DNA from: Auanema rhodensis
Lineage: Eukaryota > Animalia > Nematoda
DNA: 64,000 nucleotides
Reading direction: 5' to 3'
NCBI GenBank assembly: GCA_964057225.1
Contig: OZ059897.1
Span: forward strand, 5,146,001 to 5,210,000
Shown: one piece after another, positions 3,001 through 31,756 of the stretch
Numbering within the stretch: the first letter of the stretch is position 1
Layout of the letters: the number at the start of each line of letters is the position of its first letter
Program-made: the position numbers and the translations under genes
Notes under the pieces: model-generated
Database searches by the model: none
What the model saw: only the letters and a program-made list of their open reading frames with translations
What the model was told of the DNA's origin: nothing

Positions 3001-6000
3001 AAAATTTGTTTTTAGACTAATATGGACATGGGGAATCTAATTTTGGGAACCGCATCTCTTTATCTTTCACGTGAAGCAAGTTAGATACCAAGTACACATC
3101 ACGTGCACATTTAATTAGCATAAATTAAAGTTCACGTAAATTTCAAAGTCATGGTTACCATGCACCAATATCAATAAAAATTTGTTTTTAGACTAATATG
3201 GACATGTGGAATCTAATTTTGAAAACCGCATCTCTTTATCTTTCACGTGAAGTGAGTTACATACCAAGTGCACATCACGTGTACATTTAATTAGCATAAA
3301 TTAAAGTTCACGTAAATTTCAAAGTCATGGTTACCATGAACCAATATCAATAACAATTTGTTTTTAGACTAATATGGACATGTGGAATCTAATTTTGAAA
3401 ACCGCATCTCTTTATCTTTCACGTGAAGTGAGTTACATACCAAGTGCACATCACGTGTACATTTAATTAGCATAAATTAAAGTTCACGTAAATTTCAAAG
3501 TCATGGTTACCATGAACCAATATCAATAACAATTTGTTTTTAGACTAATATGGACATGGGGAATCTAATTTTGAAAACCGCATCTCTTTATCTTTCACGT
3601 GAAGCAAGTTACATACCAAGTGCACAGCACGTGTACATTTAATTAGCATAAATTAAAGTTCACGTAAATTTCAAAGTCATGGTTACCACGCACCAATATC
3701 AATAAAAATTTGTTTTTAGACTAATATGGACATGGGGAATCTAATTTTGGGAACCGCATCTCTTTATCTTTCACGTGAAGCAAGTTAGATACCAAGTACA
3801 CATCACGTGCACATTTAATTAGCATAAATTAAAGTTCACGTAAATTTCAAAGTCATGGTTACCATGCACCAATATCAATAAAAATTTGTTTTTAGACTAA
3901 TATGGACATGTGGAATCTAATTTTGAAAACCGCATCTCTTTATCTTTCACGTGAAGTGAGTTACATACCAAGTGCACATCACGTGTACATTTAATTAGCA
4001 TAAATTAAAGTTCACGTAAATTTCAAAGTCATGGTTACCATGCACCAATATCAATAAAAATTTGTTTTTAGACTAATATGAACATGGGGAATCTAATTTT
4101 GAAAATCGCATCTCTTTATCTTTCACGTGAAGCGAGTTACATACCCAGTGCACATCACGTGCACATTTAATTAGCATAAATTAAAGTTCACGTAAATTTC
4201 AGAGTCATGGTTACCATGCACCAATATCAATAAAAATTTGTTTTTAGACTAATATGGACATGTGGAATCTAATTTTGAAAACCGCATCTCTTTATCTTTC
4301 ACGTGAAGCAAGTTACATACCAAGTGCACATCACGTGTACATTTAATTAGCATAAATTAAAGTTCACGTAAATTTCAAAGTCATGGTTACCATGCACCAA
4401 TATCAATAAAAATTTGTTTTTAGACTAATATGGACATGGGGAATCTAATTTTGAAAACCGCATCTCTTTATCTTTCACGTGAAGCAAGTTACATACCAAG
4501 TGCACAGCACGTGTACATTTAATTAGCATAAATTAAAGTTCACGTAAATTTCAAAGTCATGGTTACCATGCACCAATATCAATAAAAATTTGTTTTTAGA
4601 CTAATATGGACATGGGGAATCTAATTTTGGGAACCGCATCTCTTTATCTTTCACGTGAAGCAAGTTAGATACCAAGTACACATCACGTGCACATTTAATT
4701 AGCATAAATTAAAGTTCACGTAAATTTCAAAGTCATGGTTACCATGCACCAATATCAATAAAAATTTGTTTTTAAACTAATATGGACATGTGGAATCTAA
4801 TTTTGAAAACCGCATCTCTTTATCTTTCACGTGAAGTGAGTTACATACCAAGTGCACATCACGTGTACATTTAATTAGCATAAATTAAAGTTCACGTAAA
4901 TTTCAAAGTCATGGTTACCATGAACCAATATCAATAACAATTTGTTTTTAGACTAATATGGACATGTGGAATCTAATTTTGAAAACCGCATCTCTTTATC
5001 TTTCACGTGAAGTGAGTTACATACCAAGTGCACATCACGTGTACATTTAATTAGCATAAATTAAAGTTCACGTAAATTTCAAAGTCATGGTTACCATGAA
5101 CCAATATCAATAACAATTTGTTTTTAGACTAATATGGACATGTGGAATCTAATTTTGGGAACCGCATCTCTTTATCTTTCACGTGAAGCAAGTTAGATAC
5201 CAAGTACACATCACGTGCACATTTAATTAGCATAAATTAAAGTTCACGTAAATTTCAAAGTCATGGTTACCATGCACCAATATCAATAAAAATTTGTTTT
5301 TAAACTAATATGAACATGTGGAATCTAATTTTGAAAACCGCATCTCTTTATCTTTCACGTGAAGTGAGTTACATACCAAGTGCACATCACGTGTACATTT
5401 AATTAGCATAAATTAAAGTTCACGTAAATTTCAAAGTCATGGTTACCATGCACTAATATCAATAAAAATTTGTTTTTAGACTAATATGAACATGGGGAAT
5501 CTAATTTTGAAAATCGCATCTCTTTATCTTTCACGTGAAGCGAGTTACATACCCAGTGCACATCACGTGCACATTTAATTAGCATAAATTAAAGTTCACG
5601 TAAATTTCAGAGTCATGGTTACCATGCACCAATATCAATAAAAATTTGTTTTTAGACTAATATGGACATGTGGAATCTAATTTTGAAAACCGCATCTCTT
5701 TATCTTTCACGTGAAGCAAGTTACATACCAAGTGCACATCACGTGTACATTTAATTAGCATAAATTAAAGTTCACGTAAATTTCAAAGTCATGGTTACCA
5801 TGCACCAATATCAATAAAAATTTGTTTTTAGACTAATATGGACATGGGGAATCTAATTTTGAAAACCGCATCTCTTTATCTTTCACGTGAAGCAAGTTAC
5901 ATACCAAGTGCACAGCACGTGTACATTTAATTAGCATAAATTAAAGTTCACGTAAATTTCAAAGTCATGGTTACCATGCACCAATATCAATAAAAATTTG

Positions 6001-9000
6001 TTTTTAGACTAATATGGACATGGGGAATCTAATTTTGGGAACCGCATCTCTTTATCTTTCACGTGAAGCAAGTTAGATACCAAGTACACATCACGTGCAC
6101 ATTTAATTAGCATAAATTAAAGTTCACGTAAATTTCAAAGTCATGGTTACCATGCACCAATATCAATAAAAATTTGTTTTTAAACTAATATGGACATGTG
6201 GAATCTAATTTTGAAAACCGCATCTCTTTATCTTTCACGTGAAGTGAGTTACATACCAAGTGCACATCACGTGTACATTTAATTAGCATAAATTAAAGTT
6301 CACGTAAATTTCAAAGTCATGGTTACCATGAACCAATATCAATAACAATTTGTTTTTAGACTAATATGGACATGTGGAATCTAATTTTGAAAACCGCATC
6401 TCTTTATCTTTCACGTGAAGTGAGTTACATACCAAGTGCACATCACGTGTACATTTAATTAGCATAAATTAAAGTTCACGTAAATTTCAAAGTCATGGTT
6501 ACCATGCACTAATATCAATAAAAATTTGTTTTTAGACTAATATGGACATGGGGAATCTAATTTTGAAAACCGCATCTCTATATCTTTCACGTGAAGCGAG
6601 TTACATACCAAGTGCACATCACGTGTACATTTAATTAGCATAAATTAAAGTTCACGTAAATTTCAAAGTCATGGTTACCATGCACTAATATCAATAAAAA
6701 TTTGTTTTTAGACTAATATGGACATGTGGAATCTAATTTTGAAAACCGCATCTCTTTATCTTTCACGTGAAGTGAGTTACATACCAAGTGCACATCACGT
6801 GTACATTCAATTAGCATAAATTAAAGTTCACGTAAATTTCAAAATCATGGTTACCATACACCAATATCAATAAAAATTTGTTTTTAGACTAATATGGACA
6901 TGTGGAATCTAATTTTGAAAACCGCATCTCTTTATCTTTCACGTGAAGCGAGTTACATACCAAGTGCACATCACGTGCACATTTAATTAGCATAAATTAA
7001 AGTTCACGTAAATTTCAAAGTCATGGTTACCATGCACCAATATCAATAAAAATTTGTTTTTAGACTAATATGGACATGTGGAATCTAATTTTGAAAACCG
7101 CATCTCTTTATCTTTCACGTGAAGCAAGTTACATACCAAGTGCACAGCACGTGTACATTTAATTAGCATAAATTAAAGTTCACGTAAATTTCAAAGTCAT
7201 GGTTACCATGCACCAATATCAATAAAAATTTGTTTTTAGACTAATATGGACATGGGGAATCTAATTGTGAAAACCGCATCTCTTTATCTTTCACGTGAAG
7301 CGAGTTACATACCAAGTGCACATCACGTGTACATTTAATTAGCATTAATTAAAGTTCACGTAAATTTCAAAGTCATGGTTACCATGAACCAATATCAATA
7401 ACAATTTGTTTTTAGACTAATATGGACATGTGGAATCTAATTTTGAAAACCGCATCTCTTTATCTTTCACGTGAAGTGAGTTACATACCAAGTGCACATC
7501 ACGTGTACATTTAATTAGCATAAATTAAAGTTCACGTAAATTTCAAAGTCATGGTTACCATGAACCAATATCAATAACAATTTGTTTTTAGACTAATATG
7601 GACATGTGGAATCTAATTTTGAAAACCGCATCTCTTTATCTTTCACGTGAAGTGAGTTACATACCAAGTGCACATCACGTGTACATTTAATTAGCATAAA
7701 TTAAAGTTCACGTAAATTTCAAAGTCATGGTTACCATGCACTAATATCAATAAAAATTTGTTTTTAGACTAATATGGACATGGGGAATCTAATTTTGAAA
7801 ACCGCATCTCTTTATCTTTCACGTGAAGCAAGTTACATACCAAGTGCACAGCACGTGTACATTTAATTAGCATAAATTAAAGTTCACGTAAATTTCAAAG
7901 TCATGGTTACCATGCACCAATATCAATAAAAATTTGTTTTTAGACTAATATGGACATGGGGAATCTAATTTTGGGAACCGCATCTCTTTATCTTTCACGT
8001 GAAGCAAGTTAGATACCAAGTACACATCACGTGCACATTTAATTAGCATAAATTAAAGTTCACGTAAATTTCAAAGTCATGGTTTCCATGCACCAATATC
8101 AATAAAAATTTGTTTTTAGACTAATATGGACATGTGGAATCTAATTTTGAAAACCGCATCTCTTTATCTTTCACGTGAAGTGAGTTACATACCAAGTGCA
8201 CATCACGTGTACATTTAATTAGCATAAATTAAAGTTCACGTAAATTTCAAAGTCATGGTTACCATGAACCAATATCAATAACAATTTGTTTTTAGACTAA
8301 TATGGACATGTGGAATCTAATTTTGAAAACCGCATCTCTTTATCTTTCACGTGAAGTGAGTTACATACCAAGTGCACATCACGTGTACATTTAATTAGCA
8401 TAAATTAAAGTTCACGTAAATTTCAAAGTCATGGTTACCATGCACCAATATCAATAAAAATTTGTTTTTAGACTAATATGGACATGTGGAATCTAATTTT
8501 GAAAACCGCATCTCTTTATCTTTCACGTGAAGTGAGTTACATACCAAGTGCACATCACGTGTACATTCAATTAGCATAAATTAAAGTTCACGTAAATTTC
8601 AAAATCATGGTTACCATGCACCAATATCAATAAAAATTTGTTTTTAGACTAATATGGACATGTGGAATCTAATTTTGAAAACCGCATCTCTTTATCTTTC
8701 ACGTGAAGCGAGTTACATACCAAGTGCACATCACGTGTACATTTAATTAGCATTAATTAAAGTTCACGTAAATTTCAAAGTCATGGTTACCATGAACCAA
8801 TATCAATAACAATTTGTTTTTAGACTAATATGGACATGTGGAATCTAATTTTGAAAACCGCATCTCTTTATCTTTCACGTGAAGCAAGTTACATACCAAG
8901 TGCACAGCACGTGTACATTTAATTAGCATAAATTAAAGTTCACGTAAATTTCAAAGTCATGGTTACCATGCACCAATATCAATAAAAATTTGTTTTTAGA

Positions 9001-12000
9001 CTAATATGGACATGGGGAATCTAATTGTGAAAACCGCATCTCTTTATCTTTCACGTGAAGCGAGTTACATACCAAGTGCACATCACGTGTACATTTAATT
9101 AGCATTAATTAAAGTTCACGTAAATTTCAAAGTCATGGTTACCATGAACCAATATCAATAACAATTTGTTTTTAGACTAATATGGACATGTGGAATCTAA
9201 TTTTGAAAACCGCATCTCTTTATCTTTCACGTGAAGTGAGTTACATACCAAGTGCACATCACGTGTACATTTAATTAGCATAAATTAAAGTTCACGTAAA
9301 TTTCAAAGTCATGGTTACCATGCACCAATATCAATAAAAATTTGTTTTTAGACTAATATGGACATGGGGAATCTAATTTTGAAAACCGCATCTCTTTATC
9401 TTTCACGTGAAGCAAGTTACATATCAAGTGCACAGCACGTGTACATTTAATTAGCATAAATTAAAGTTCACGTAAATTTCAAAGTCATGGTTACCATGCA
9501 CCAATATCAATAAAAATTTGTTTTTAGACTAATATGGACATGGGGAATCTAATTTTGGGAACCGCATCTCTTTATCTTTCACGTGAAGCAAGTTAGATAC
9601 CAAGTACACATCACGTGCACATTTAATTAGCATAAATTAAAGTTCACGTAAATTTCAAAGTCATGGTTACCATGCACCAATATCAATAAAAATTTGTTTT
9701 TAGACTAATATGGACATGTGGAATCTAATTTTGAAAACCGCATCTCTTTATCTTTCACGTGAAGTGAGTTACATACCAAGTGCACATCACGTGTACATTC
9801 AATTAGCATAAATTAAAGTTCACGTAAATTTCAAAATCATGGTTACCATGCACCAATATCAATAAAAATTTGTTTTTAGACTAATATGGACATGTGGAAT
9901 CTAATTTTGAAAACCGCATCTCTTTATCTTTCACGTGAAGCGAGTTACATACCAAGTGCACATCACGTGTACATTTAATTAGCATTAATTAAAGTTCACG
10001 TAAATTTCAAAGTCATGGTTACCATGCACCAATATCAATGAAAATTTGTTTTTAGACTAATATGGACATGTGGAATCTAATTTTGAAAACCGCATCTCTT
10101 TATCTTTCACGTGAAGCAAGTTACATACCAAGTGCACAGCACGTGTACATTTAATTAGCATAAATTAAAGTTCACGTAAATTTCAAAGTCATGGTTACCA
10201 TGCACCAATATCAATAAAAATTTGTTTTTAGACTAATATGGACATGGGGAATCTAACTGTGAAAACCGCATCTCTTTATCTTTCACGTGAAGCGAGTTAC
10301 ATACCAAGTGCACATCACGTGTACATTTAATTAGCATTAATTAAAGTTCACGTAAATTTCAAAGTCATGGTTACCATGAACCAATATCAATAACAATTTG
10401 TTTTTAGACTAATATGGACATGTGGAATCTAATTTTGAAAACCGCATCTCTTTATCTTTCACGTGAAGTGAGTTACATACCAAGTGCACATCACGTGTAC
10501 ATTTAATTAGCATAAATTAAAGTTCACGTAAATTTCAAAGTCATGGTTACCATGAACCAATATCAATAACAATTTGTTTTTAGACTAATATGGACATGTG
10601 GAATCTAATTTTGAGAACCGCATCTCTTTATCTTTCACGTGAAGTGAGTTACATACCAAGTGCACATCACGTGTACATTTAATTAGCATAAATTAAAGTT
10701 CACGTAAATTTCAAAGTCATGGTTACCATGAACCAATATCAATAACAATTTGTTTTTAGACTAATATGGACATGTGGAATCTAATTTTGAAAACCGCATC
10801 TCTTTATCTTTCACGTGAAGTGAGTTACATACCAAGTGCACATCACGTGTACATTTAATTAGCATAAATTAAAGTTCACGTAAATTTCAAAGTCATGGTT
10901 ACCATGCACTAATATCAATAAAAATTTCTTTTTAGACTAATATGGACATGGGGAATCTAATTTTGAAAACCGCATCTCTTTATCTTTCACGTGAAGCAAG
11001 TTACATACCAAGTGCACAGCACGTGTACATTTAATTAGCATAAATTAAAGTTCACGTAAATTTCAAAGTCATGGTTACCATGCACCAATATCAATAAAAA
11101 TTTGTTTTTAGACTAATATGGACATGGGGAATCTAATTTTGGGAACCGCATCTCTTTATCTTTCACGTGAAGCAAGTTAGATACCAAGTACACATCACGT
11201 GCACATTTAATTAGCATAAATTAAAGTTCACGTAAATTTCAAAGTCATGGTTTCCATGCACCAATATCAATAAAAATTTGTTTTTAGACTAATATGGACA
11301 TGTGGAATCTAATTTTGAAAACCGCATCTCTTTATCTTTCACGTGAAGTGAGTTACATACCAAGTGCACATCACGTGTACATTTAATTAGCATAAATTAA
11401 AGTTCACGTAAATTTCAAAGTCATGGTTACCATGAACCAATATCAATAACAATTTGTTTTTAGACTAATATGGACATGTGGAATCTAATTTTGAAAACCG
11501 CATCTCTTTATCTTTCACGTGAAGTGAGTTACATACCAAGTGCACATCACGTGTACATTTAATTAGCATAAATTAAAGTTCACGTAAATTTCAAAGTCAT
11601 GGTTACCATGCACCAATATCAATAAAAATTTGTTTTTAGACTAATATGGACATGTGGAATCTAATTTTGAAAACCGCATCTCTTTATCTTTCACGTGAAG
11701 TGAGTTACATACCAAGTGCACATCACGTGTACATTCAATTAGCATAAATTAAAGTTCACGTAAATTTCAAAATCATGGTTACCATGCACCAATATCAATA
11801 AAAATTTGTTTTTAGACTAATATGGACATGTGGAATCTAATTTTGAAAACCGCATCTCTTTATCTTTCACGTGAAGCGAGTTACATACCAAGTGCACATC
11901 ACGTGTACATTTAATTAGCATTAATTAAAGTTCACGTAAATTTCAAAGTCATGGTTACCATGAACCAATATCAATAACAATTTGTTTTTAGACTAATATG

Positions 12001-14420
12001 GACATGTGGAATCTAATTTTGAAAACCGCATCTCTTTATCTTTCACGTGAAGCAAGTTACATACCAAGTGCACAGCACGTGTACATTTAATTAGCATAAA
12101 TTAAAGTTCACGTAAATTTCAAAGTCATGGTTACCATGCACCAATATCAATAAAAATTTGTTTTTAGACTAATATGGACATGGGGAATCTAATTGTGAAA
12201 ACCGCATCTCTTTATCTTTCACGTGAAGCGAGTTACATACCAAGTGCACATCACGTGTACATTTAATTAGCATTAATTAAAGTTCACGTAAATTTCAAAG
12301 TCATGGTTACCATGAACCAATATCAATAACAATTTGTTTTTAGACTAATATGGACATGTGGAATCTAATTTTGAAAACCGCATCTCTTTATCTTTCACGT
12401 GAAGTGAGTTACATACCAAGTGCACATCACGTGTACATTTAATTAGCATAAATTAAAGTTCACGTAAATTTCAAAGTCATGGTTACCATGCACCAATATC
12501 AATAAAAATTTGTTTTTAGACTAATATGGACATGGGGAATCTAATTTTGAAAACCGCATCTCTTTATCTTTCACGTGAAGCAAGTTACATATCAAGTGCA
12601 CAGCACGTGTACATTTAATTAGCATAAATTAAAGTTCACGTAAATTTCAAAGTCATGGTTACCATGCACCAATATCAATAAAAATTTGTTTTTAGACTAA
12701 TATGGACATGGGGAATCTAATTTTGGGAACCGCATCTCTTTATCTTTCACGTGAAGCAAGTTAGATACCAAGTACACATCACGTGCACATTTAATTAGCA
12801 TAAATTAAAGTTCACGTAAATTTCAAAGTCATGGTTACCATGCACCAATATCAATAAAAATTTGTTTTTAGACTAATATGGACATGTGGAATCTAATTTT
12901 GAAAACCGCATCTCTTTATCTTTCACGTGAAGTGAGTTACATACCAAGTGCACATCACGTGTACATTCAATTAGCATAAATTAAAGTTCACGTAAATTTC
13001 AAAATCATGGTTACCATGCACCAATATCAATAAAAATTTGTTTTTAGACTAATATGGACATGTGGAATCTAATTTTGAAAACCGCATCTCTTTATCTTTC
13101 ACGTGAAGCGAGTTACATACCAAGTGCACATCACGTGTACATTTAATTAGCATTAATTAAAGTTCACGTAAATTTCAAAGTCATGGTTACCATGCACCAA
13201 TATCAATGAAAATTTGTTTTTAGACTAATATGGACATGTGGAATCTAATTTTGAAAACCGCATCTCTTTATCTTTCACGTGAAGCAAGTTACATACCAAG
13301 TGCACAGCACGTGTACATTTAATTAGCATAAATTAAAGTTCACGTAAATTTCAAAGTCATGGTTACCATGCACCAATATCAATAAAAATTTGTTTTTAGA
13401 CTAATATGGACATGGGGAATCTAACTGTGAAAACCGCATCTCTTTATCTTTCACGTGAAGCGAGTTACATACCAAGTGCACATCACGTGTACATTTAATT
13501 AGCATTAATTAAAGTTCACGTAAATTTCAAAGTCATGGTTACCATGAACCAATATCAATAACAATTTGTTTTTAGACTAATATGGACATGTGGAATCTAA
13601 TTTTGAAAACCGCATCTCTTTATCTTTCACGTGAAGTGAGTTACATACCAAGTGCACATCACGTGTACATTTAATTAGCATAAATTAAAGTTCACGTAAA
13701 TTTCAAAGTCATGGTTACCATGAACCAATATCAATAACAATTTGTTTTTAGACTAATATGGACATGTGGAATCTAATTTTGAGAACCGCATCTCTTTATC
13801 TTTCACGTGAAGTGAGTTACATACCAAGTGCACATCACGTGTACATTTAATTAGCATAAATTAAAGTTCACGTAAATTTCAAAGTCATGGTTACCATGAA
13901 CCAATATCAATAACAATTTGTTTTTAGACTAATATGGACATGTGGAATCTAATTTTGAAAACCGCATCTCTTTATCTTTCACGTGAAGTGAGTTACATAC
14001 CAAGTGCACATCACGTGTACATTTAATTAGCATAAATTAAAGTTCACGTAAATTTCAAAGTCATGGTTACCATGCACTAATATCAATAAAAATTTCTTTT
14101 TAGACTAATATGGACATGGGGAATCTAATTTTGAAAACCGCATCTCTTTATCTTTCACGTGAAGCAAGTTACATACCAAGTGCACAGCACGTGTACATTT
14201 AATTAGCATAAATTAAAGTTCACGTAAATTTCAAAGTCATGGTTACCATGCACCAATATCAATAAAAATTTGTTTTTAGACTAATATGGACATGGGGAAT
14301 CTAATTTTGGGAACCGCATCTCTTTATCTTTCACGTGAAGCAAGTTAGATACCAAGTACACATCACGTGCACATTTAATTAGCATAAATTAAAGTTCACG
14401 TAAATTTCAAAGTCATGGTT
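1..14420 (+). repeat. Forward satellite, variant domain A (copy 1)
   Basis: Enriched for CATGAACC..AATAACAA and AGCATTAATT variants, and for a multi-SNP monomer (TTTTGGGAACC, AGTTAGATA, AAGTACAC) at 582, 1814, 3046, 3750, 4630, 5158, 6038, 7974, 9558, 11142, 12726 and 14310. Confidence 0.9.
7761..14420 (+). repeat. 18-mer (3,168-bp) higher-order tandem duplication built on a 9-mer period
   Basis: Rare variants recur at +3168: GGTTTCC 8085/11253, TCAATGAAA 10040/13208, AATTTCTTT 10928/14096. The GGGAAC monomer recurs every 1584 bp from 7974 to 14310. Confidence 0.9.
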
Positions 14421-16431
14421 ACGTGCTGTGCACTTGGTATGTAACTTGCTTCACGTGAAAGATAAAGAGATGCGGTTTTCAAAATTAGATTCCCCATGTC
14501 CATATTAGTCTAAAAAGAAATTTTTATTGATATTAGTGCATGGTAACCATGACTTTGAAATTTACGTGAACTTTAATTTATGCTAATTAAATGTACACGT
14601 GATGTGCACTTGGTATGTAACTCACTTCACGTGAAAGATAAAGAGATGCGGTTTTCAAAATTAGATTCCACATGTCCATATTAGTCTAAAAACAAATTGT
14701 TATTGATATTGGTTCATGGTAACCATGACTTTGAAATTTACGTGAACTTTAATTTATGCTAATTAAATGTACACGTGATGTGCACTTGGTATGTAACTCA
14801 CTTCACGTGAAAGATAAAGAGATGCGGTTTTTAAAATTAGATTCCCCATGTCCATATTAGTCTAAAAACAAATTTTATTGATATTGGTGCATGGTAACCA
14901 TGACTTTGAAATTTACGTGAACTTTAATTTATGCTAATTAAATGTGCACGTGATGTGCACTTGGTATGTAACTTGCTTCACGTGAAAGATAAAGAGATGC
15001 GGTTTTCAAAATTAGATTCCCCATGTCCATATTAGTCTAAAAACAAATTTTTATTGATATTGGTGCATGGTAACCATGACTTTGAAATTTACGTGAACTT
15101 TAATTTATGCTAATTAAATGTACACGTGATGTGCACTTGGTATGTAACTTGCTTCACGTGAAAGATAAAGAGATGCGGTTTTCAAAATTAGATTCCCCAT
15201 GTCCATATTAGTCTAAAAACAAATTTTTATTGATATTGGTGCATGGTAACCATGACTTTGAAATTTACGTGAACTTTAATTTATGCTAATTAAATGTGCA
15301 CGTGATGTGCACTTGGTATGTAACTTGCTTCACGTGAAAGATAAAGAGATGCGGTTTTCAAAATTAGATTCCCCATGTCCATATTAGTCTAAAAACAAAT
15401 TTTTATTGATATTGGTGCATGGTAACCATGACTTTGAAATTTACGTGAACTTTAATTTATGCTAATTAAATGTGCACGTGATGTGCACTTGGTATGTAAC
15501 TTGCTTCACGTGAAAGATAAAGAGATGCAGTTTTCAAAATTAGATTCCCCATGTCCATAATAGTCTAAAAACAAATTTTTATTGATATTGGTGCATGGTA
15601 ACCATGACTTTGAAATTTACGTGAACTTTAATTTATGCTAATTAAATGTGCACGTGATGTGCACTTGGTATGTAACTTGCTTCACGTGAAAGATAAAGAG
15701 ATGCGGTTTTCAAAATTAGATTCCCCATGTCCATATTAGTCTAAAAACAAATTTTTATTGATATTGGTGCATGGTAACCATGACTTTGAAATTTACGTGA
15801 ACTTTAATTTATGCTAATTAAATGTGCACGTGATGTGCACTTGGTATGTAACTTGCTTCACGTGAAAGATAAAGAGATGCAGTTTTCAAAATTAGATTCC
15901 CCATGTCCATATTAGTCTAAAAACAAATTTTTATTGATATTGGTGCATGGTAACCATGACTTTGAAATTTACGTGAACTTTAATTTATGCTAATTAAATG
16001 TGCACGTGATGTGCACTTGGTATGTAACTTGCTTCACGTGAAAGATAAAGAGATGCGGTTTTCAAAATTAGATTCCTCATGTCCATATTAGTCTAAAAAC
16101 AAATTTTTATTGATATTGGTGCATGGTAACCATGACTTTGAAATTTACGTGAACTTTAATTTATGCTAATTAAATGTGCACGTGATGTGCACTTGGTATG
16201 TAACTTGCTTCACGTGAAAGATAAAGAGATGCGGTTTTCAAAATTAGATTCCCCATGTCCATATTAGTCTAAAAACAAATTTTTATTGATATTAGTGCAT
16301 GGTAACCATGACTTTGAAATTTACGTGAACTTTAATTTATGCTAATTAAATGTGCACGTGATGTGCACTTGGTATGTAACTTGCTTCACGTGAAAGATAA
16401 AGAGATGCGGTTTTCAAAATTAGATTCCCCA
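14421..16431 (-). repeat. Inverted satellite block 1 (2,011 bp, ~11.4 monomers)
   Basis: The sequence switches to the reverse complement at GTCATGGTT|ACGTGCTGTGCAC (14420/14421) and ends at TAGATTCCCCA (16431). Confidence 0.98.
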
Positions 16432-16451
16432 AAAAAAAAATTAGATTCGAT
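16432..16451. other. 20-nt junction insertion AAAAAAAAATTAGATTCGAT
   Basis: Out-of-register bases between the inverted block and the restart of forward satellite (TTACATACC at 16452). 16437-16448 copies AAAATTAGATTC from 16416-16427. Confidence 0.92.
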
Positions 16452-19400
16452 TTACATACCAAGTGCACATCACGTGCACATTTAATTAGCATGAATTAAA
16501 GTTCACGTAAATTTCAAAGTCATGGTTACCATGCACCAATATCAATAAAAATTTGTTTTTAGACTAATATGGACATGAGGAATCTAATTTTGAAAACCGC
16601 ATCTCTTTATCTTTCACGTGAAGCAAGTTACATACCAAGTGCACATCACGTGCACATTTAATTAGCATAAATTAAAGTTCACGTAAATTTCAAAGTCATG
16701 GTTACCATGCACCAATATCAATAAAAATTTGTTTTTAGACTAATATGGACATGGGGAATCTAATTTTGAAAACTGCATCTCTTTATCTTTCACGTGAAGC
16801 AAGTTACATACCAAGTGCACATCACGTGCACATTTAATTAGCATAAATTAAAGTTCACGTAAATTTCAAAGTCATGGTTACCATGCACCAATATCAATAA
16901 AAATTTGTTTTTAGACTAATATGGACATGGGGAATCTAATTTTGAAAACCGCATCTCTTTATCTTTCACGTGAAGCAAGTTACATACCAAGTGCACATCA
17001 CGTGCACATTTAATTAGCATAAATTAAAGTTCACGTAAATTTCAAAGTCATGGTTACCATGCACCAATATCAATAAAAATTTGTTTTTAGACTATTATGG
17101 ACATGGGGAATCTAATTTTGAAAACTGCATCTCTTTATCTTTCACGTGAAGCAAGTTACATACCAAGTGCACATCACGTGCACATTTAATTAGCATAAAT
17201 TAAAGTTCACGTAAATTTCAAAGTCATGGTTACCATGCACCAATATCAATAAAAATTTGTTTTTAGACTAATATGGACATGGGGAATCTAATTTTGAAAA
17301 CCGCATCTCTTTATCTTTCACGTGAAGCAAGTTACATACCAAGTGCACATCACGTGCACATTTAATTAGCATAAATTAAAGTTCACGTAAATTTCAAAGT
17401 CATGGTTACCATGCACCAATATCAATAAAAATTTGTTTTTAGACTAATATGGACATGGGGAATCTAATTTTGAAAACCGCATCTCTTTATCTTTCACGTG
17501 AAGCAAGTTACATACCAAGTGCACATCACGTGTACATTTAATTAGCATAAATTAAAGTTCACGTAAATTTCAAAGTCATGGTTACCATGCACCAATATCA
17601 ATAAAAATTTGTTTTTAGACTAATATGGACATGGGGAATCTAATTTTGAAAACCGCATCTCTTTATCTTTCACGTGAAGCAAGTTACATACCAAGTGCAC
17701 ATCACGTGCACATTTAATTAGCATAAATTAAAGTTCACGTAAATTTCAAAGTCATGGTTACCATGCACCAATATCAATAAAATTTGTTTTTAGACTAATA
17801 TGGACATGGGGAATCTAATTTTAAAAACCGCATCTCTTTATCTTTCACGTGAAGTGAGTTACATACCAAGTGCACATCACGTGTACATTTAATTAGCATA
17901 AATTAAAGTTCACGTAAATTTCAAAGTCATGGTTACCATGCACCAATATCAATAAAAATTTGTTTTTAGACTAATATGGACATGGGGAATCTAATTTTAA
18001 AAACCGCATCTCTTTATCTTTCACGTGAAGTGAGTTACATACCAAGTGCACATCACGTGCACATTTAATTAGCATAAATTAAAGTTCACGTAAATTTCAA
18101 ATTTATGGTTACCATGCACCAATATCAATAAAATTTGTTTTTAGACTAATATGGACATGGGGAATCTAATTTTGAAAACCGCATCTCTTTATCTTTCACG
18201 TGAAGCGAGTTACATACCAAGTGCACATCACGTGTACATTTAATTAGCATAAATTAAAGTTCACGTAAATTTCAAAGTCATGGTTACCATGCACCAATAT
18301 CAATAAAAATTTGTTTTTAGACTAATATGGACATGGGGAATCTAATTTTGAAAACCGCATCTCTTTATCTTTCACGTGAAGCGAGTTACATACCAAGTGC
18401 ACATCACGTGTACATTTAATTAGCATAAATTAAAGTTCACGTAAATTTCAAAGTCATGGTTACCATGCACCAATATCAATAAAAATTTGTTTTTAGACTA
18501 ATATGGACATGTGAAATCTAATTTTAAAAACCGCATCTCTTTATCTTTCACGTGAAGCAAGTTACATACCAAGTGCACATCACGTGTACATTTAATTAGC
18601 ATAAATTAAAGTTCACGTAAATTTCAAAGTCATGGTTACCATGCACTAATATCAATAAAAATTTGTTTTTAGACTAATATGGACATGGGGAATCTAATTT
18701 TGAAAACCGCATCTCTTTATCTTTCACGTGAAGTGGGTTACATACCAAGTGCACATCACGTGTACATTTAATTAGCATAAATTAAAGTTCACGTAAATTT
18801 CAAAGTCATGGTTACCATGCACTAATATCAATAAAAATTTGTTTTTAGACTAATATGGACATGTGGAATCTAATTTTAAAAACCGCATCTCTTTATCTTT
18901 CACGTGAAGCAAGTTACATACCAAGTGCACATCACGTGTACATTTAATTAGCATAAATTAAAGTTCACGTAAATTTCAAAGTCATGGTTACCATGCACCA
19001 ATATCAATAAAAATTTGTTTTTAGACTAATATGGACATGGGGAATCTAATTTTGAAAATCGCATCTCTTTATCTTTCACGTGAAGCGAGTTACATACCAA
19101 GTGCACATCACGTGTACATTTAATTAGCATAAATTAAAGTTCACGTAAATTTCAAAGTCATGGTTACCATGCACCAATGTCAATAAAAATTTGTTTTTAG
19201 ACTAATATGGACATGGGGAATCTAATTTTAAAAACCGCATCTCTTTATCTTTCACGTGAAGTGAGTTACATACCAAGTGCACATCACGTGTACATTTAAT
19301 TAGCATAAATTAAAGTTCACGTAAATTTCAAAGTCATGGTTACCATGCACCAATATCAATAAAAATTTGTTTTTAGACTAATATGGACATGGGGAATCTA

Positions 19401-21461
19401 ATTTTGAAAACCGCATCTCTTTATCTTTCACGTGAAGCAAGTTACATACCAAGTGCACATCACGTGCACATTTAATTAGCATAAATTAAAGTTCACGTAA
19501 ATTTCAAAGTCATGGTTACCATGCACCAATATCAATAAAAATTTGTTTTTAGACTAATATGGACATGGGGAATCTAATTTTAAAAACCGCATCTCTTTAT
19601 CTTTCACGTGAAGTGAGTTACATACCAAGTGCACATCACGTGTACATTTAATTAGCATAAATTAAAGTTCACGTAAATTTCAAAGTCATGGTTACCATGC
19701 TCCAATATCAATAAAAATTTGTTTTTAGACTAATATGGACATGGGGAATCTAATTTTGAAAACCGCATCTCTTTATCTTTCACGTGAAGCAAGTTACATA
19801 CCAAGTGCACATCACGTGCACATTTAATTAGCATAAATTAAAGTTCACGTAAATTTCAAAGTCATGGTTACCATGCACCAATATCAATAAAAATTTGTTT
19901 TTAGACTAATATGGACATGGGGAATCTAATTTTAAAAACCGCATCTCTTTATCTTTCACGTGAAGCAAGTTACATACCAAGTGCACATCACGTGTACATT
20001 TAATTAGCATAAATTAAAGTTCACTTAAATTTCAAAGTCATGGTTACCATGCACCAATATCAATAAAAATTTGTTTTTAGACTAATATGGACATGTGGAA
20101 TCTAATTTTGAAAACCGCATCTCTTTATCTTTCACGTGAAGTGAGTTACATACCAAGTGCACATCACGTGTACATTTAATTAGCATAAATTAAAGTTCAC
20201 GTAAATTTCAAAGTCATGGTTACCATGCACCAATATCAATAAAAATTTGTTTTTAGATTAATATGGACATGGGGAATCTAATTTTGAAAACCGCATCTCT
20301 TTATCTTTCACGTGAAGCAAGTTACATACCAAGTGCACAGCACGTGTACATTTAATTAGCATAAATTAAAGTTCACGTAAATTTCAAAGTCATGGTTACC
20401 ATGCACCAATATCAATAAAAATTTGTTTTTAGACTAATATGGACATGGGGAATCTAATTTTGAAAACCGCATCTCTTTATCTTTCACGTGAAGCGAGTTA
20501 CATACCAAGTGCACATCACGTGTACATTTAATTAGCATAAATTAAAGTTCACGTAAATTTCAAAGTCATGGTTACCATGCACCAATATCAATAAAAATTT
20601 GTTTTTAGACTAATATGGACATGTGAAATCTAATTTTAAAAACCGCATCTCTTTATCTTTCACGTGAAGCAAGTTACATACCAAGTGCACATCACGTGTA
20701 CATTTAATTAGCATAAATTAAAGTTCACGTAAATTTCAAAGTCATGGTTACCATGCACTAATATCAATAAAAATTTGTTTTTAGACTAATATGGACATGG
20801 GGAATCTAATCTTGAAAACCGCATCTCTTTATCTTTCACGTGAAGTGGGTTACATACCAAGTGCACATCACGTGTACATTTAATTAGCATAAATTAAAGT
20901 TCACGTAAATTTCAAAGTCATGGTTACCATGCACTAATATCAATAAAAATTTGTTTTTAGACTAATATGGACATGTGGAATCTAATTTTGAAAACCGCAT
21001 CTCTTTATCTTTCACGTGAAGCAAGTTACATACCAAGTGCACAGCACGTGTACATTTAATTAGCATAAATTAAAGTTCACGTAAATTTCAAAGTCATGGT
21101 TACCATGCACCAATATCAATAAAAATTTGTTTTTAGACTAATATGGACATGGGGAATCTTATTTTGAAAACCGCATCTCTTTATCTTTCACGTGAAGCGA
21201 GTTACATACCAAGTGCACATCACGTGTACATTTAATTAGCATAAATTAAAGTTCACGTAAATTTCAAAGTCATGGTTACCATGCACCAATATCAATAAAA
21301 ATTTGTTTTTAGACTAATATGGACATGTGAAATCTAATTTTAAAAACCGCATCTCTTTATCTTTCACGTGAAGCAAGTTACATACCAAGTGCACATCACG
21401 TGTACATTTAATTAGCATAAATTAAAGTTCACGTAAATTTCAAAGTCATGGTTACCATGCT
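16452..21461 (+). repeat. Forward satellite, variant domain B (short copy)
   Basis: Markers TTTTAAAAACC, CATGTGAAATC, GAAGTGGG (18736, 20848), TTCACTTA, AGATTAAT, CATGCTCC and 175-bp monomers (AATAAAATTTG). Domain-A markers are absent. Confidence 0.88.
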
Positions 21462-21487
21462 CCAATATCAATAAAAATTTGTTTTTA

Positions 21488-24400
21488 AACTAATATGGAC
21501 ATGTGGAATCTAATTTTGAAAACCGCATCTCTTTATCTTTCACGTGAAGTGAGTTACATACCAAGTGCACATCACGTGTACATTTAATTAGCATAAATTA
21601 AAGTTCACGTAAATTTCAAAGTCATGGTTACCATGCACCAATATCAATAAAAATTTGTTTTTAAACTAATATGGACATGTGGAATCTAATTTTGAAAACC
21701 GCATCTCTTTATCTTTCACGTGAAGTGAGTTACATACCAAGTGCACATCACGTGTACATTTAATTAGCATAAATTAAAGTTCACGTAAATTTCAAAGTCA
21801 TGGTTACCATGAACCAATATCAATAACAATTTGTTTTTAGACTAATATGGACATGTGGAATCTAATTTTGAAAACCGCATCTCTTTATCTTTCACGTGAA
21901 GTGAGTTACATACCAAGTGCACATCACGTGTACATTTAATTAGCATAAATTAAAGTTCACGTAAATTTCAAAGTCATGGTTACCATGAACCAATATCAAT
22001 AACAATTTGTTTTTAGACTAATATGGACATGTGGAATCTAATTTTGGGAACCGCATCTCTTTATCTTTCACGTGAAGCAAGTTAGATACCAAGTACACAT
22101 CACGTGCACATTTAATTAGCATAAATTAAAGTTCACGTAAATTTCAAAGTCATGGTTACCATGCACCAATATCAATAAAAATTTGTTTTTAAACTAATAT
22201 GAACATGTGGAATCTAATTTTGAAAACCGCATCTCTTTATCTTTCACGTGAAGTGAGTTACATACCAAGTGCACATCACGTGTACATTTAATTAGCATAA
22301 ATTAAAGTTCACGTAAATTTCAAAGTCATGGTTACCATGCACTAATATCAATAAAAATTTGTTTTTAGACTAATATGAACATGGGGAATCTAATTTTGAA
22401 AATCGCATCTCTTTATCTTTCACGTGAAGCGAGTTACATACCCAGTGCACATCACGTGCACATTTAATTAGCATAAATTAAAGTTCACGTAAATTTCAGA
22501 GTCATGGTTACCATGCACCAATATCAATAAAAATTTGTTTTTAGACTAATATGGACATGTGGAATCTAATTTTGAAAACCGCATCTCTTTATCTTTCACG
22601 TGAAGCAAGTTACATACCAAGTGCACATCACGTGTACATTTAATTAGCATAAATTAAAGTTCACGTAAATTTCAAAGTCATGGTTACCATGCACCAATAT
22701 CAATAAAAATTTGTTTTTAGACTAATATGGACATGGGGAATCTAATTTTGAAAACCGCATCTCTTTATCTTTCACGTGAAGCAAGTTACATACCAAGTGC
22801 ACAGCACGTGTACATTTAATTAGCATAAATTAAAGTTCACGTAAATTTCAAAGTCATGGTTACCATGCACCAATATCAATAAAAATTTGTTTTTAGACTA
22901 ATATGGACATGGGGAATCTAATTTTGGGAACCGCATCTCTTTATCTTTCACGTGAAGCAAGTTAGATACCAAGTACACATCACGTGCACATTTAATTAGC
23001 ATAAATTAAAGTTCACGTAAATTTCAAAGTCATGGTTACCATGCACCAATATCAATAAAAATTTGTTTTTAAACTAATATGGACATGTGGAATCTAATTT
23101 TGAAAACCGCATCTCTTTATCTTTCACGTGAAGTGAGTTACATACCAAGTGCACATCACGTGTACATTTAATTAGCATAAATTAAAGTTCACGTAAATTT
23201 CAAAGTCATGGTTACCATGAACCAATATCAATAACAATTTGTTTTTAGACTAATATGGACATGTGGAATCTAATTTTGAAAACCGCATCTCTTTATCTTT
23301 CACGTGAAGTGAGTTACATACCAAGTGCACATCACGTGTACATTTAATTAGCATAAATTAAAGTTCACGTAAATTTCAAAGTCATGGTTACCATGCACTA
23401 ATATCAATAAAAATTTGTTTTTAGACTAATATGGACATGGGGAATCTAATTTTGAAAACCGCATCTCTATATCTTTCACGTGAAGCGAGTTACATACCAA
23501 GTGCACATCACGTGTACATTTAATTAGCATAAATTAAAGTTCACGTAAATTTCAAAGTCATGGTTACCATGCACTAATATCAATAAAAATTTGTTTTTAG
23601 ACTAATATGGACATGTGGAATCTAATTTTGAAAACCGCATCTCTTTATCTTTCACGTGAAGTGAGTTACATACCAAGTGCACATCACGTGTACATTCAAT
23701 TAGCATAAATTAAAGTTCACGTAAATTTCAAAATCATGGTTACCATACACCAATATCAATAAAAATTTGTTTTTAGACTAATATGGACATGTGGAATCTA
23801 ATTTTGAAAACCGCATCTCTTTATCTTTCACGTGAAGCGAGTTACATACCAAATGCACATCACGTGCACATTTAATTAGCATAAATTAAAGTTCACGTAA
23901 ATTTCAAAGTCATGGTTACCATGCACCAATATCAATAAAAATTTGTTTTTAGACTAATATGGACATGTGGAATCTAATTTTGAAAACCGCATCTCTTTAT
24001 CTTTCACGTGAAGCAAGTTACATACCAAGTGCACAGCACGTGTACATTTAATTAGCATAAATTAAAGTTCACGTAAATTTCAAAGTCATGGTTACCATGC
24101 ACCAATATCAATAAAAATTTGTTTTTAGACTAATATGGACATGGGGAATCTAATTGTGAAAACCGCATCTCTTTATCTTTCACGTGAAGCGAGTTACATA
24201 CCAAGTGCACATCACGTGTACATTTAATTAGCATTAATTAAAGTTCACGTAAATTTCAAAGTCATGGTTACCATGAACCAATATCAATAACAATTTGTTT
24301 TTAGACTAATATGGACATGTGGAATCTAATTTTGAAAACCGCATCTCTTTATCTTTCACGTGAAGTGAGTTACATACCAAGTGCACATCACGTGTACATT

Positions 24401-27400
24401 TAATTAGCATAAATTAAAGTTCACGTAAATTTCAAAGTCATGGTTACCATGAACCAATATCAATAACAATTTGTTTTTAGACTAATATGGACATGTGGAA
24501 TCTAATTTTGAAAACCGCATCTCTTTATCTTTCACGTGAAGTGAGTTACATACCAAGTGCACATCACGTGTACATTTAATTAGCATAAATTAAAGTTCAC
24601 GTAAATTTCAAAGTCATGGTTACCATGCACTAATATCAATAAAAATTTGTTTTTAGACTAATATGGACATGGGGAATCTAATTTTGAAAACCGCATCTCT
24701 TTATCTTTCACGTGAAGCAAGTTACATACCAAGTGCACAGCACGTGTACATTTAATTAGCATAAATTAAAGTTCACGTAAATTTCAAAGTCATGGTTACC
24801 ATGCACCAATATCAATAAAAATTTGTTTTTAGACTAATATGGACATGGGGAATCTAATTTTGGGAACCGCATCTCTTTATCTTTCACGTGAAGCAAGTTA
24901 GATACCAAGTACACATCACGTGCACATTTAATTAGCATAAATTAAAGTTCACGTAAATTTCAAAGTCATGGTTTCCATGCACCAATATCAATAAAAATTT
25001 GTTTTTAGACTAATATGGACATGTGGAATCTAATTTTGAAAACCGCATCTCTTTATCTTTCACGTGAAGTGAGTTACATACCAAGTGCACATCACGTGTA
25101 CATTTAATTAGCATAAATTAAAGTTCACGTAAATTTCAAAGTCATGGTTACCATGAACCAATATCAATAACAATTTGTTTTTAGACTAATATGGACATGT
25201 GGAATCTAATTTTGAAAACCGCATCTCTTTATCTTTCACGTGAAGTGAGTTACATACCAAGTGCACATCACGTGTACATTTAATTAGCATAAATTAAAGT
25301 TCACGTAAATTTCAAAGTCATGGTTACCATGCACCAATATCAATAAAAATTTGTTTTTAGACTAATATGGACATGTGGAATCTAATTTTGAAAACCGCAT
25401 CTCTTTATCTTTCACGTGAAGTGAGTTACATACCAAGTGCACATCACGTGTACATTCAATTAGCATAAATTAAAGTTCACGTAAATTTCAAAATCATGGT
25501 TACCATGCACCAATATCAATAAAAATTTGTTTTTAGACTAATATGGACATGTGGAATCTAATTTTGAAAACCGCATCTCTTTATCTTTCACGTGAAGCGA
25601 GTTACATACCAAGTGCACATCACGTGTACATTTAATTAGCATTAATTAAAGTTCACGTAAATTTCAAAGTCATGGTTACCATGAACCAATATCAATAACA
25701 ATTTGTTTTTAGACTAATATGGACATGTGGAATCTAATTTTGAAAACCGCATCTCTTTATCTTTCACGTGAAGCAAGTTACATACCAAGTGCACAGCACG
25801 TGTACATTTAATTAGCATAAATTAAAGTTCACGTAAATTTCAAAGTCATGGTTACCATGCACCAATATCAATAAAAATTTGTTTTTAGACTAATATGGAC
25901 ATGGGGAATCTAATTGTGAAAACCGCATCTCTTTATCTTTCACGTGAAGCGAGTTACATACCAAGTGCACATCACGTGTACATTTAATTAGCATTAATTA
26001 AAGTTCACGTAAATTTCAAAGTCATGGTTACCATGAACCAATATCAATAACAATTTGTTTTTAGACTAATATGGACATGTGGAATCTAATTTTGAAAACC
26101 GCATCTCTTTATCTTTCACGTGAAGTGAGTTACATACCAAGTGCACATCACGTGTACATTTAATTAGCATAAATTAAAGTTCACGTAAATTTCAAAGTCA
26201 TGGTTACCATGAACCAATATCAATAACAATTTGTTTTTAGACTAATATGGACATGTGGAATCTAATTTTGAAAACCGCATCTCTTTATCTTTCACGTGAA
26301 GTGAGTTACATACCAAGTGCACATCACGTGTACATTTAATTAGCATAAATTAAAGTTCACGTAAATTTCAAAGTCATGGTTACCATGAACCAATATCAAT
26401 AACAATTTGTTTTTAGACTAATATGGACATGTGGAATCTAATTTTGAAAACCGCATCTCTTTATCTTTCACGTGAAGTGAGTTACATACCAAGTGCACAT
26501 CACGTGTACATTTAATTAGCATAAATTAAAGTTCACGTAAATTTCAAAGTCATGGTTACCATGCACCAATATCAATAAAAATTTGTTTTTAGACTAATAT
26601 GGACATGTGGAATCTAATTTTGAAAACCGCATCTCTTTATCTTTCACGTGAAGTGAGTTACATACCAAGTGCACATCACGTGTACATTCAATTAGCATAA
26701 ATTAAAGTTCACGTAAATTTCAAAATCATGGTTACCATGCACCAATATCAATAAAAATTTGTTTTTAGACTAATATGGACATGTGGAATCTAATTTTGAA
26801 AACCGCATCTCTTTATCTTTCACGTGAAGCGAGTTACATACCAAGTGCACATCACGTGTACATTTAATTAGCATTAATTAAAGTTCACGTAAATTTCAAA
26901 GTCATGGTTACCATGAACCAATATCAATAACAATTTGTTTTTAGACTAATATGGACATGTGGAATCTAATTTTGAAAACCGCATCTCTTTATCTTTCACG
27001 TGAAGCAAGTTACATACCAAGTGCACAGCACGTGTACATTTAATTAGCATAAATTAAAGTTCACGTAAATTTCAAAGTCATGGTTACCATGCACCAATAT
27101 CAATAAAAATTTGTTTTTAGACTAATATGGACATGGGGAATCTAATTGTGAAAACCGCATCTCTTTATCTTTCACGTGAAGCGAGTTACATACCAAGTGC
27201 ACATCACGTGTACATTTAATTAGCATTAATTAAAGTTCACGTAAATTTCAAAGTCATGGTTACCATGAACCAATATCAATAACAATTTGTTTTTAGACTA
27301 ATATGGACATGTGGAATCTAATTTTGAAAACCGCATCTCTTTATCTTTCACGTGAAGTGAGTTACATACCAAGTGCACATCACGTGTACATTTAATTAGC

Positions 27401-31736: not shown

Positions 31737-31756
31737 AAAAAAAAATTAGATTCGAT
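31737..31756. other. Second copy of the 20-nt junction insertion
   Basis: TCCCC A10 TTAGATTCGAT TTACATACC, identical to the junction at 16431-16460. Confidence 0.92.

Follow-up and report, generated by a model that had tools for sequence, protein, structure and literature searches.

Within the window, the whole 64,000-nucleotide stretch of Auanema rhodensis DNA that was analysed, a 176-bp satellite array holds a reversed patch of about 2 kb that consists of backward copies of pieces of both of its neighbours, joined in the middle of the patch. The sequence suggests, with a probability that we put at about even, that this patch is a real and recent complex rearrangement in which one extending 3' end underwent three template switches, and that it was later copied in a tandem duplication of approximately 16.8 kb.

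The inverted block extends from 14421 to 16431. Its left end (14421-14829, minus strand) is the exact reverse complement of the left arm L (13784-14192, plus strand; A-type array, monomers m-part/A/n-part), with 0 mismatches in 409 bp, and the match stops at the outer end of L at the GAGAAC variant (77A>G) at 13783. The stretch 14715-16203 (minus strand) is a reverse-complement copy of R, the right arm (16452-17940, plus strand; B-type array, monomers e S B d B c B Q), with a single mismatch in 1,489 bp. This mismatch is at 16493, 42 nt past the right junction (a single observation), where R carries a derived G and both the consensus and the counterpart in the block carry A. The two mirrors overlap in a 115-bp zone (14715-14829, minus strand) where L and R are identical and both mirrors are exact; the zone is limited by mismatches at 14830/13783 and 14714/17941, and the L-derived and R-derived copies join somewhere inside it. 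An earlier note on this DNA had described these mirrors and their overlap, and all of its coordinates and counts hold; the monomer table also reproduces, in order, the variants that it had named as mirrored (38G>C, 77A>G, 61G>A, 81C>T, 50A>T, and the monomer with a 1-bp deletion). A repeat search recovered the same two arm pairs with inter-arm spacings of 228 and 248 nt, and mirrors placed at registers offset by plus or minus 176 bp were clearly worse, with at least 9 mismatches over the same spans. Chance falls far short of accounting for such a match.

Backward copying of the flanks, exact or nearly so, accounts for 1,783 of the 2,011 inverted bases, and only a 228-bp segment, referred to below as loop 2, is copy-neutral. 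A simple two-break inversion, which would reverse a single-copy segment whose ends do not duplicate the flanks, was rejected on this count, and the contention of the earlier note that nothing was simply flipped, both flanks having been copied backwards and joined through monomer homology, is borne out. The single forward locus matching all 2,011 bp that the same note had proposed looking for was not found within the window. An inversion with staggered breaks, which places inverted duplications at the far ends, was also rejected, as each flank is mirrored at the adjoining rather than the distant end of the block.

The right mirror (14715-16203) matches only the right flank and that flank's duplicate, and its next-best forward locus, at 62.2-64 kb, differs at 22 of 1,801 positions. 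For the left arm, a second source that matches just as exactly lies 3,168 bp upstream (10616-11021), within an 18-monomer higher-order-repeat (HOR) copy, so that the variants of the left mirror are not private to the adjoining flank. Outside the arms, the block diverges from its flanks by 3.1% and 3%, i.e., by the background level of about 3%.

Monomer haplotypes indicate which part is the copy. The left arm lies within the 18-monomer HOR, which recurs in other copies, and the right arm runs on into a recurrent Q-T-U-C-D monomer order. Both flanks are native forward array and the block is therefore the copy. For at least 14.4 kb the left flank contains A-type monomers alone, and past a second block, described below, the array is exclusively B-type over 32 kb. 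The chimeric block derives from two native forward segments, one being L and the other loop 2 plus R, joined within the 115-bp identity. A 176-bp satellite from a fungus-gnat paper was considered as the same satellite and rejected, the monomer motifs being absent from the text supplement of that paper.

Each junction is accompanied by an unmirrored loop. Loop 1 (14193-14420, plus strand) is 228 nt of forward array whose last base is the apex T of the monomer palindrome CATGGT-T-ACCATG; 14420 is the end of the forward tract because the native next monomer has 11A>T in other HOR copies. The left junction is placed at the apex of the monomer's strongest palindrome and has 0-2 nt of microhomology, a 3-nt TAC microhomology having been ruled out by comparison with native j monomers. 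Loop 2 (16204-16431, minus strand) is 228 nt of inverted array that is phase-continuous with the inverted block; it is present only in the inverted orientation, with its forward copy absent. The earlier description of the block as a mirror of its flanks applies to most of it but not to this segment, which copies no present flank. Loop 2 is instead the native upstream neighbour of R (monomer f and part of the preceding monomer): in a forward paralog (62258-63840, plus strand; monomers f f S B. B w T U), loop 2 and then R follow in native forward order, and 62317-62670 is an exact match to block positions 16078-16431.

The two loops are equal in length and have the same polarity, each being continuous with the arm on its 5' side (top strand), and their tips fall in differing phases, at positions 10 and 59 of the monomer, numbered from the start adopted in this analysis. 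Sister-chromatid fusion after one staggered nick pair forces equal loops but also the same loop sequence, and was rejected given that the loop starts differ in monomer phase. The right junction carries a 20-nt insertion (16432-16451) that is partly templated and without a stem. This filler consists of an A run, then a 12-nt re-copy of AAAATTAGATTC, the template of which lies 15-26 nt upstream, then GAT. A 38-mer from the right junction had 0 matches in metagenome contigs. Logan unitigs of about 60 bp from four runs were placed on 14350-16530; most match several places, and they are too short to span the junctions.

The whole structure occurs twice. Positions 12495-18701 and 27800-34006 (both plus strand) are identical over 6,207 bp with 0 mismatches, and the second copy, 15,305 bp downstream, has its inverted block at 29726-31736 and its filler at 31737-31756. 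A duplication of these 6.2 kb only, at a fixed 15,305-bp offset, was rejected, as monomer-level alignment gives approximately 16.8 kb with register shifts. The first unit of this tandem segmental duplication (4691-21442, plus strand) carries the structure. The units differ by one mismatch between 4691-9322 and 21580-26211 and by one mismatch between 18600-19531 and 35310-36241, and also by monomer-scale indels. Between them lies a B-to-A transition monomer (21443-21618, plus strand) in which B-type and A-type markers occur together, 18A>T being found along with 45G>A, 61G>T, and 107C>T. The duplication probably came after the rearrangement, with the monomer-scale indels gained since. Because the second copy is a duplicate, the number of independent structures is one.

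The reading that we favour has a single 3' end turn back twice in a U-turn, on each occasion to a point 228 nt behind its tip, and switch once under the guidance of homology, in an MMBIR-like manner. A forward A-type strand ending at 14420, at a stalled or broken fork, would have turned back, landed 228 nt behind its tip, and copied some 300-400 nt backwards. The resulting reverse-type tail could not have paired with the forward array past the break; homology would have led it instead to engage, in the wrong sense, a B-type monomer, and it would have copied 1.7 kb backwards before dissociating. The strand would then have gained the filler and made a second turn 228 nt behind its tip, thereby regaining the forward orientation, after which homology would have brought it back onto the B-type array, where synthesis continued. 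The forward copy of loop 2 would have been lost along with whatever stood between the A and B sub-arrays. A second turn would be required because a single fold-back is not healable by annealing inside a homogeneous tandem array. We infer that these steps were a single event with synthesis in this direction, and that their course was that of MMBIR or serial fold-back behaviour. The near-absent microhomology at the left junction would suit end joining better than primed hairpin extension, and a break placed exactly where the A and B sub-arrays meet would have to be fortuitous or else point to a deletion that is not observed.

Known systems share parts of this architecture. In GCR assays in the yeast S. 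cerevisiae, fold-back inversions arise with large-loop hairpins, two sequential hairpins, and homology-mediated resolution; the second hairpin uses sequence from the extension of the first, and the wild-type median loop is about 36 nt (PMC7467729). The structure described here has in common with these an inverted duplication, a single-copy loop at the turn, and resolution by homology with another repeat. It differs in its 228-nt loops, in its nearly nil stem microhomology, in that its middle part is copied from the other side of the break rather than from its own extension, and in its context of a homogeneous array. The short single-copy loop continuous with one arm that characterizes a fold-back inversion is present at both turns (228 nt, and 228 + 20 nt, with other registers excluded), and a priming stem at the loop base was not found at either junction (0-2 nt of microhomology at one and the 20-nt insertion at the other). 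MMBIR is recognized by several junctions in cis with microhomology or templated insertion, and here there are three joins in 2 kb and the 12-nt re-copy; the near-blunt left junction lends it weaker support. Point mutations grouped close to the junctions are a further mark of MMBIR, and here the one observation of this kind is the single arm mismatch, 42 nt from the right junction. Inverted triplications by iterative template switches (MMBIR/FoSTeS) have been described (PMC11293582), and the structure shares with them several cis junctions (here in 2 kb), a templated insertion, one point change near a junction, and inverted duplicated segments. Unlike them, it is without a triplicated segment and without pre-existing inverted low-copy repeats, one of its three switches goes through 115 bp of perfect homology, and its scale is that of kb rather than 100 kb to Mb.

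An assembly or sequencing artefact, whether from a chimeric molecule formed by fold-back or from a repeat graph walked wrongly, could have made the block, its second copy, or both, but is unlikely. The read evidence consists of the unitigs of about 60 bp, the exact 6.2-kb second copy could be a graph loop walked twice or a false tandem duplication, and in-vitro polymerase fold-back chimeras likewise show little microhomology. However, forward orientation is restored after two distinct junctions with 14 kb and 47 kb of coherent array on the two sides, and the divergence between the duplication units, one or two substitutions and several monomer-scale indels, is of the kind seen between real paralogs. 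A missed adapter or duplex read-through would give spacer-free palindromes rather than a chimeric join with loss of forward loop 2, and both the templated insertion and the break at a hairpin apex appear biological. If the structure is real, it might still have come from a two-ended double-strand break whose ends folded back separately and whose products were joined by homology, although we find this unlikely. Placed side by side, loop 1 would end and loop 2 begin with a gap of only 46 nt in monomer phase, the join falls in 115 bp of identity, and the 0-2 nt of microhomology or filler at the junctions fits broken ends. Yet limited extension and annealing of 3' tails, the first of two explanations offered in the earlier note, predicts a junction on the left side of loop 2, with loop 2 forward and continuous with R; the opposite is observed, loop 2 being inverted and continuous with the block. 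The two-ended break would require either that the distal fragment was replicated in full as a palindrome, in the manner of breakage-fusion-bridge, or that the loop was flipped later, so that its rescue takes a dicentric or acentric intermediate or an additional flip, and it presupposes that A-type and B-type array adjoined at the break. The loop could indeed have been turned over by recombination between the 1.5-kb arms, in which case the argument from polarity would no longer hold.

The second explanation in the earlier note was an inverted triplication, either ODIRA or the TRP/INV of a DUP-TRP/INV-DUP, with a middle inverted copy later reduced (here to 2 kb) through recombination between monomers; this we hold to be improbable. 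The loop polarity at both junctions is that predicted for an ODIRA product, both junctions have single-copy loops, and the forward segment between the blocks (16452-29727) goes from R to L plus loop 1 and looks unit-like; secondary rearrangement of TRP/INV is moreover the published unifying model (PMC10766186). The forward-inverted-forward layout, the interrupted palindromic junctions, the same loop polarity on one strand, and a loop size of the same order as a lagging-strand gap are all common to ODIRA (PMC10766186, PMC10766183), but here mirroring is confined to 409 and 1,489 bp, without triplication of a whole unit. The ancestor would need R upstream of L, and both outer flanks should be full copies of the unit. 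Instead, the flanks diverge from the block by 3% beyond the arms, and are purely A-type on the left and purely B-type after the second block, so that three unit copies with the middle one inverted were not found. The transition monomer at 21443 makes the R-to-L segment better read as a B/A hybrid that the later tandem duplication produced, and an extra duplication would be needed to account for two blocks. ODIRA junctions have 5-6-bp inverted repeats 40-80 nt apart in yeast (PMC10766186), as compared to repeats of 0-2 nt and 228-nt loops here. As for DUP-TRP/INV-DUP, which has duplicated segments on both sides of an inverted triplicated one and a junction that runs through pre-existing inverted repeats, nothing here is threefold beyond the uninformative 115 bp, with L and R each occurring twice per structure (once forward and once inverted). 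Two further readings are less probable still. Gene conversion between inverted monomers could have made the ends of an older inverted segment uniform with the flanks, and any satellite strand switch does have 97%-identical inverted repeats beside it that are able to convert each other. This is very unlikely in that two independent tracts must tile the block exactly without old sequence left between them, both must skip exactly 228 nt beside the junction rather than begin there, and loop 2 carries on the R-derived tract in native contiguous order. The inverted re-insertion of a 13-monomer extrachromosomal satellite circle excised from the L-to-R region draws on the fact that the block, when reverse-complemented, reads as the inferred ancestral L-loop 1-loop 2-R region circularly permuted, with a monomer-to-monomer joint, and on the sum L + loop 1 + 46 + loop 2 + R - 115 = 2,288 = 13 x 176. 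It is, however, highly improbable, as it assumes the 46-nt adjacency and two separate losses of 274 nt each, the circle and the chromosome having undergone one apiece.

Satellite and centromeric arrays often switch orientation, and the origin of the switches is usually unreadable because the monomers are too alike. Here, rare monomer variants let each inverted base be traced to its source, and the tracing shows a strand switch made by copying rather than flipping. In complete human assemblies, the strand switches of betaSat, HSat3, and alphaSat are scattered, without hotspots, and are regarded as a by-product of array turnover (10.64898/2026.07.22.740206). The structure shares with these a change of orientation in an otherwise head-to-tail array; those surveys list switch points, whereas monomer haplotypes here give source tracing at the level of single bases. 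We raise, as a speculative proposal that we think is probably wrong, that U-turn template switching has a fixed setback of about 228 nt that acts as a molecular ruler for strand switches here and perhaps in satellites generally, its length being set by the repair or replication intermediate, for instance by the nascent strand still paired in a migrating D-loop or by a lagging-strand gap. If so, other strand-switch palindromes in this genome would share loop length and polarity, and U-turns would come in pairs, since a single turn cannot be healed in a head-to-tail array. The proposed rearrangement would be a base-resolved example of a strand switch in a tandem array that fits known template-switching repair. 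If the structure is true, its loop length, loop polarity, and chimeric middle would offer a testable template for strand-switch surveys in complete assemblies, and a near-perfect interrupted palindrome of 1.5 kb can persist and spread within a satellite, in this case via the 16.8-kb tandem duplication.

The entire window is a single array of a 176-bp satellite (32% G+C; 363.8 copies, 96% matches) along which GC and AT skew show two sign reversals. We read the orientation of the array from a strand-specific k-mer map of the window, which gave forward segments at 1-14422, 16452-29727 and 31757-64000 and reverse segments at 14427-16431 and 29732-31736, i.e., two inverted blocks where the earlier note had named one (14421-16431; the second copy lies at 29726-31736). 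Each monomer (e.g., 14150-14200) carries two CACGTG palindromes, TTCACGTGAA, plus a 13-nt palindrome, CATGGT-T-ACCATG. A lone 171-bp monomer with a 5-bp deletion is found at 47127-47297, the rest of the array being made of 175/176-bp monomers. When queried with 14350-16530, four sequencing runs under three organism labels, from three studies, contained the satellite in extreme abundance, which points to a repeat family common to related taxa or strains.

Both flanks of the block are mirrored within it. The left arm, 13784-14192, is the reverse complement of 14421-14829 over 409 bp with 0 mismatches, and the right arm, 16452-17940, is that of 14715-16203 over 1,489 bp with 1 mismatch, at 16493; our recomputation thus reproduced the coordinates and mismatch counts of the earlier note exactly. 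A repeat search of the sequence returned both arm pairs, with 228 and 248 nt between arms, and displacing the register by one or two monomers raised the mismatch count for these spans from 0 and 1 to 9 or more. The proposal that the best matches to the mirrors would be the immediate flanks held in the window for the right mirror, for which forward matches of similar length occur only at that flank and its duplicate (the next-best forward locus, 62.2-64 kb, has 22 differences over 1,801 positions), but not for the left mirror, which has an equally exact second match at 10616-11021. The left flank is part of an 18-monomer higher-order repeat (HOR; 3,168 bp) present in tandem.

To tell copy from source, the array was cut into 356 monomers and the variants were labeled with letters. 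In the left flank the monomers run ...F N I k l A m A n F, which is how the HOR of one sub-array (A-type) is natively ordered; this order recurs upstream. The right flank, in the B-type sub-array, has the order e S B d B c B Q T U C D; its Q-T-U-C-D run reappears on the forward strand at both 34.4 and 39.0 kb, and 62.26-63.84 kb holds a forward-strand paralog, f f S B. B w T U. Because these orders recur forward elsewhere, both flanks are native. In reverse reading the block runs f e S B d B c B Q and then into A-type monomers, and the labels support its being a chimera in which a B-type run meets an A-type one, with the change-over inside 14715-14829, where both sources are identical. As the earlier note claimed, nothing was simply flipped: the inverted tract spans 2,011 bases, of which 1,783 are duplicates of flank sequence, and this rules out a simple inversion. 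The A-type HOR (7898-14409) has an 18-monomer period of 3,168 bp (F j A N I R H A v F N I k l A m A n) and the B-type HOR (34364-43500) one of ~26 monomers, 4,574 bp (x Q T U C D G O V W B V W X L E P C D G o C D ...); A-to-B transitions in this window are confined to the inverted blocks.

At the left junction, the forward tract stops at 14420, monomer position 10 by the monomer start used here, and this breakpoint sits exactly on the T at the apex of the monomer's strongest palindrome, CATGGT-T-ACCATG. Since the next monomer has 11A>T in both other HOR copies, the A at 14421 was assigned to the inverted copy, leaving a microhomology of 0 nt, or 2 nt at most. At the right junction, the inverted tract stops at 16431 and the forward array restarts at 16452 after a filler of 20 extra bases, namely an A run, a 12-nt re-copy of AAAATTAGATTC whose source lies 15-26 nt upstream, and GAT. 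The arms disagree only at 16493, 42 nt past this junction, where the G is derived. A scan of metagenome contigs for the right junction returned 0 matches.

Two unmirrored stretches, loop 1 (14193-14420) and loop 2 (16204-16431), are both 228 nt long yet start at different monomer phases. This equality suggests a physical ruler, a hypothesis drawn from one independent structure. On the top strand each loop runs on from the arm at its 5' side, the same polarity as in ODIRA-type products (PMC10766186). Loop 2, consisting of monomer f and part of the preceding one, has no mirror in the present flanks; as the forward paralog at 62317-62670 matches block positions 16078-16431 exactly, loop 2 natively adjoins the right arm upstream. 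Its sequence survives only inverted, the forward copy being gone.

The region was later duplicated. The stretch 12495-18701 equals 27800-34006 with zero differences, and monomer-level and gapped alignments place it at the core of a ~16.8-kb tandem duplication that also pairs 4691-9322 with 21580-26211 (1 mismatch), 18600-19531 with 35310-36241 (1 mismatch), and 19532-~21440 with 36418-~38330. Across the units (4691-38330), the ~11 kb that aligns cleanly shows 1-2 differences, and the units are further set apart by several monomer-scale indels, so copy-number change outpaces point mutation here. The B-to-A joint between the units is the monomer at 21443-21618, which combines B-type 18A>T with A-type 45G>A, 61G>T and 107C>T; a full b monomer comes next, an order that one crossover with the A-type array as it now stands fails to explain. 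Because the block lies inside both units, the inversion preceded the duplication, which was itself later remodeled.

The earlier note had offered two origins, neither of which the structure supports. Under an inverted triplication (ODIRA or DUP-TRP/INV-DUP, with a contracted center or not), the match to the block would have to carry on in the left flank past 13783 and in the right flank past 17940. The forward stretch between the two blocks does resemble a unit, running from right arm to left arm, but flanks and block differ past the arms at 51 of ~1,600 and 19 of 640 positions, i.e., at array background, and the outer flanks consist purely of A-type monomers over at least 14.4 kb on the left and purely of B-type ones over 32 kb on the right. 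If instead the two ends of one break had each folded back and their new tails annealed, loop 2 should be forward and continuous with the right flank. In fact, loop 2 is inverted and runs on from the block, so that origin is viable only if a palindromic intermediate was replicated in full or the loop later flipped between the 1.5-kb arms. An older inversion altered by gene conversion was also rejected, as the two conversion tracts must tile the block exactly, each skipping 228 nt at a junction.

As such, the observation and the chimeric copying of the earlier note stand, and in place of its mechanisms we favor serial template switching as most likely, with one 3' end making two U-turns and one homology-guided switch. 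The 3' end would stall or break at the hairpin apex, 14420, turn back 228 nt behind its tip, and copy ~300-400 nt of left flank backwards. The resulting reverse-type tail, unable to anneal to the head-to-tail array past the break, would find homology in a B-type monomer, engage it in the wrong sense, and copy 1.7 kb backwards. The end would then dissociate, gain the filler, make a second turn, again 228 nt behind the tip, that regains forward orientation, and re-engage the B-type array by homology. The same behavior is seen in MMBIR (PMC11293582) and in yeast fold-back inversions, among which are cases of two successive hairpins and of resolution through homology (PMC7467729).

We consider it rather unlikely that an assembly artifact lies behind the structure. 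Read data over 14350-16530 yielded only ~60-bp unitigs, and of all features of the structure its copy number is the least certain; nevertheless, inheritance of the inversion through a since-remodeled duplication argues for a real, heritable structure. Satellite strand switches are common (10.64898/2026.07.22.740206) and this class of mechanism is already known; pending long-read confirmation, the block would represent a well-resolved further case.
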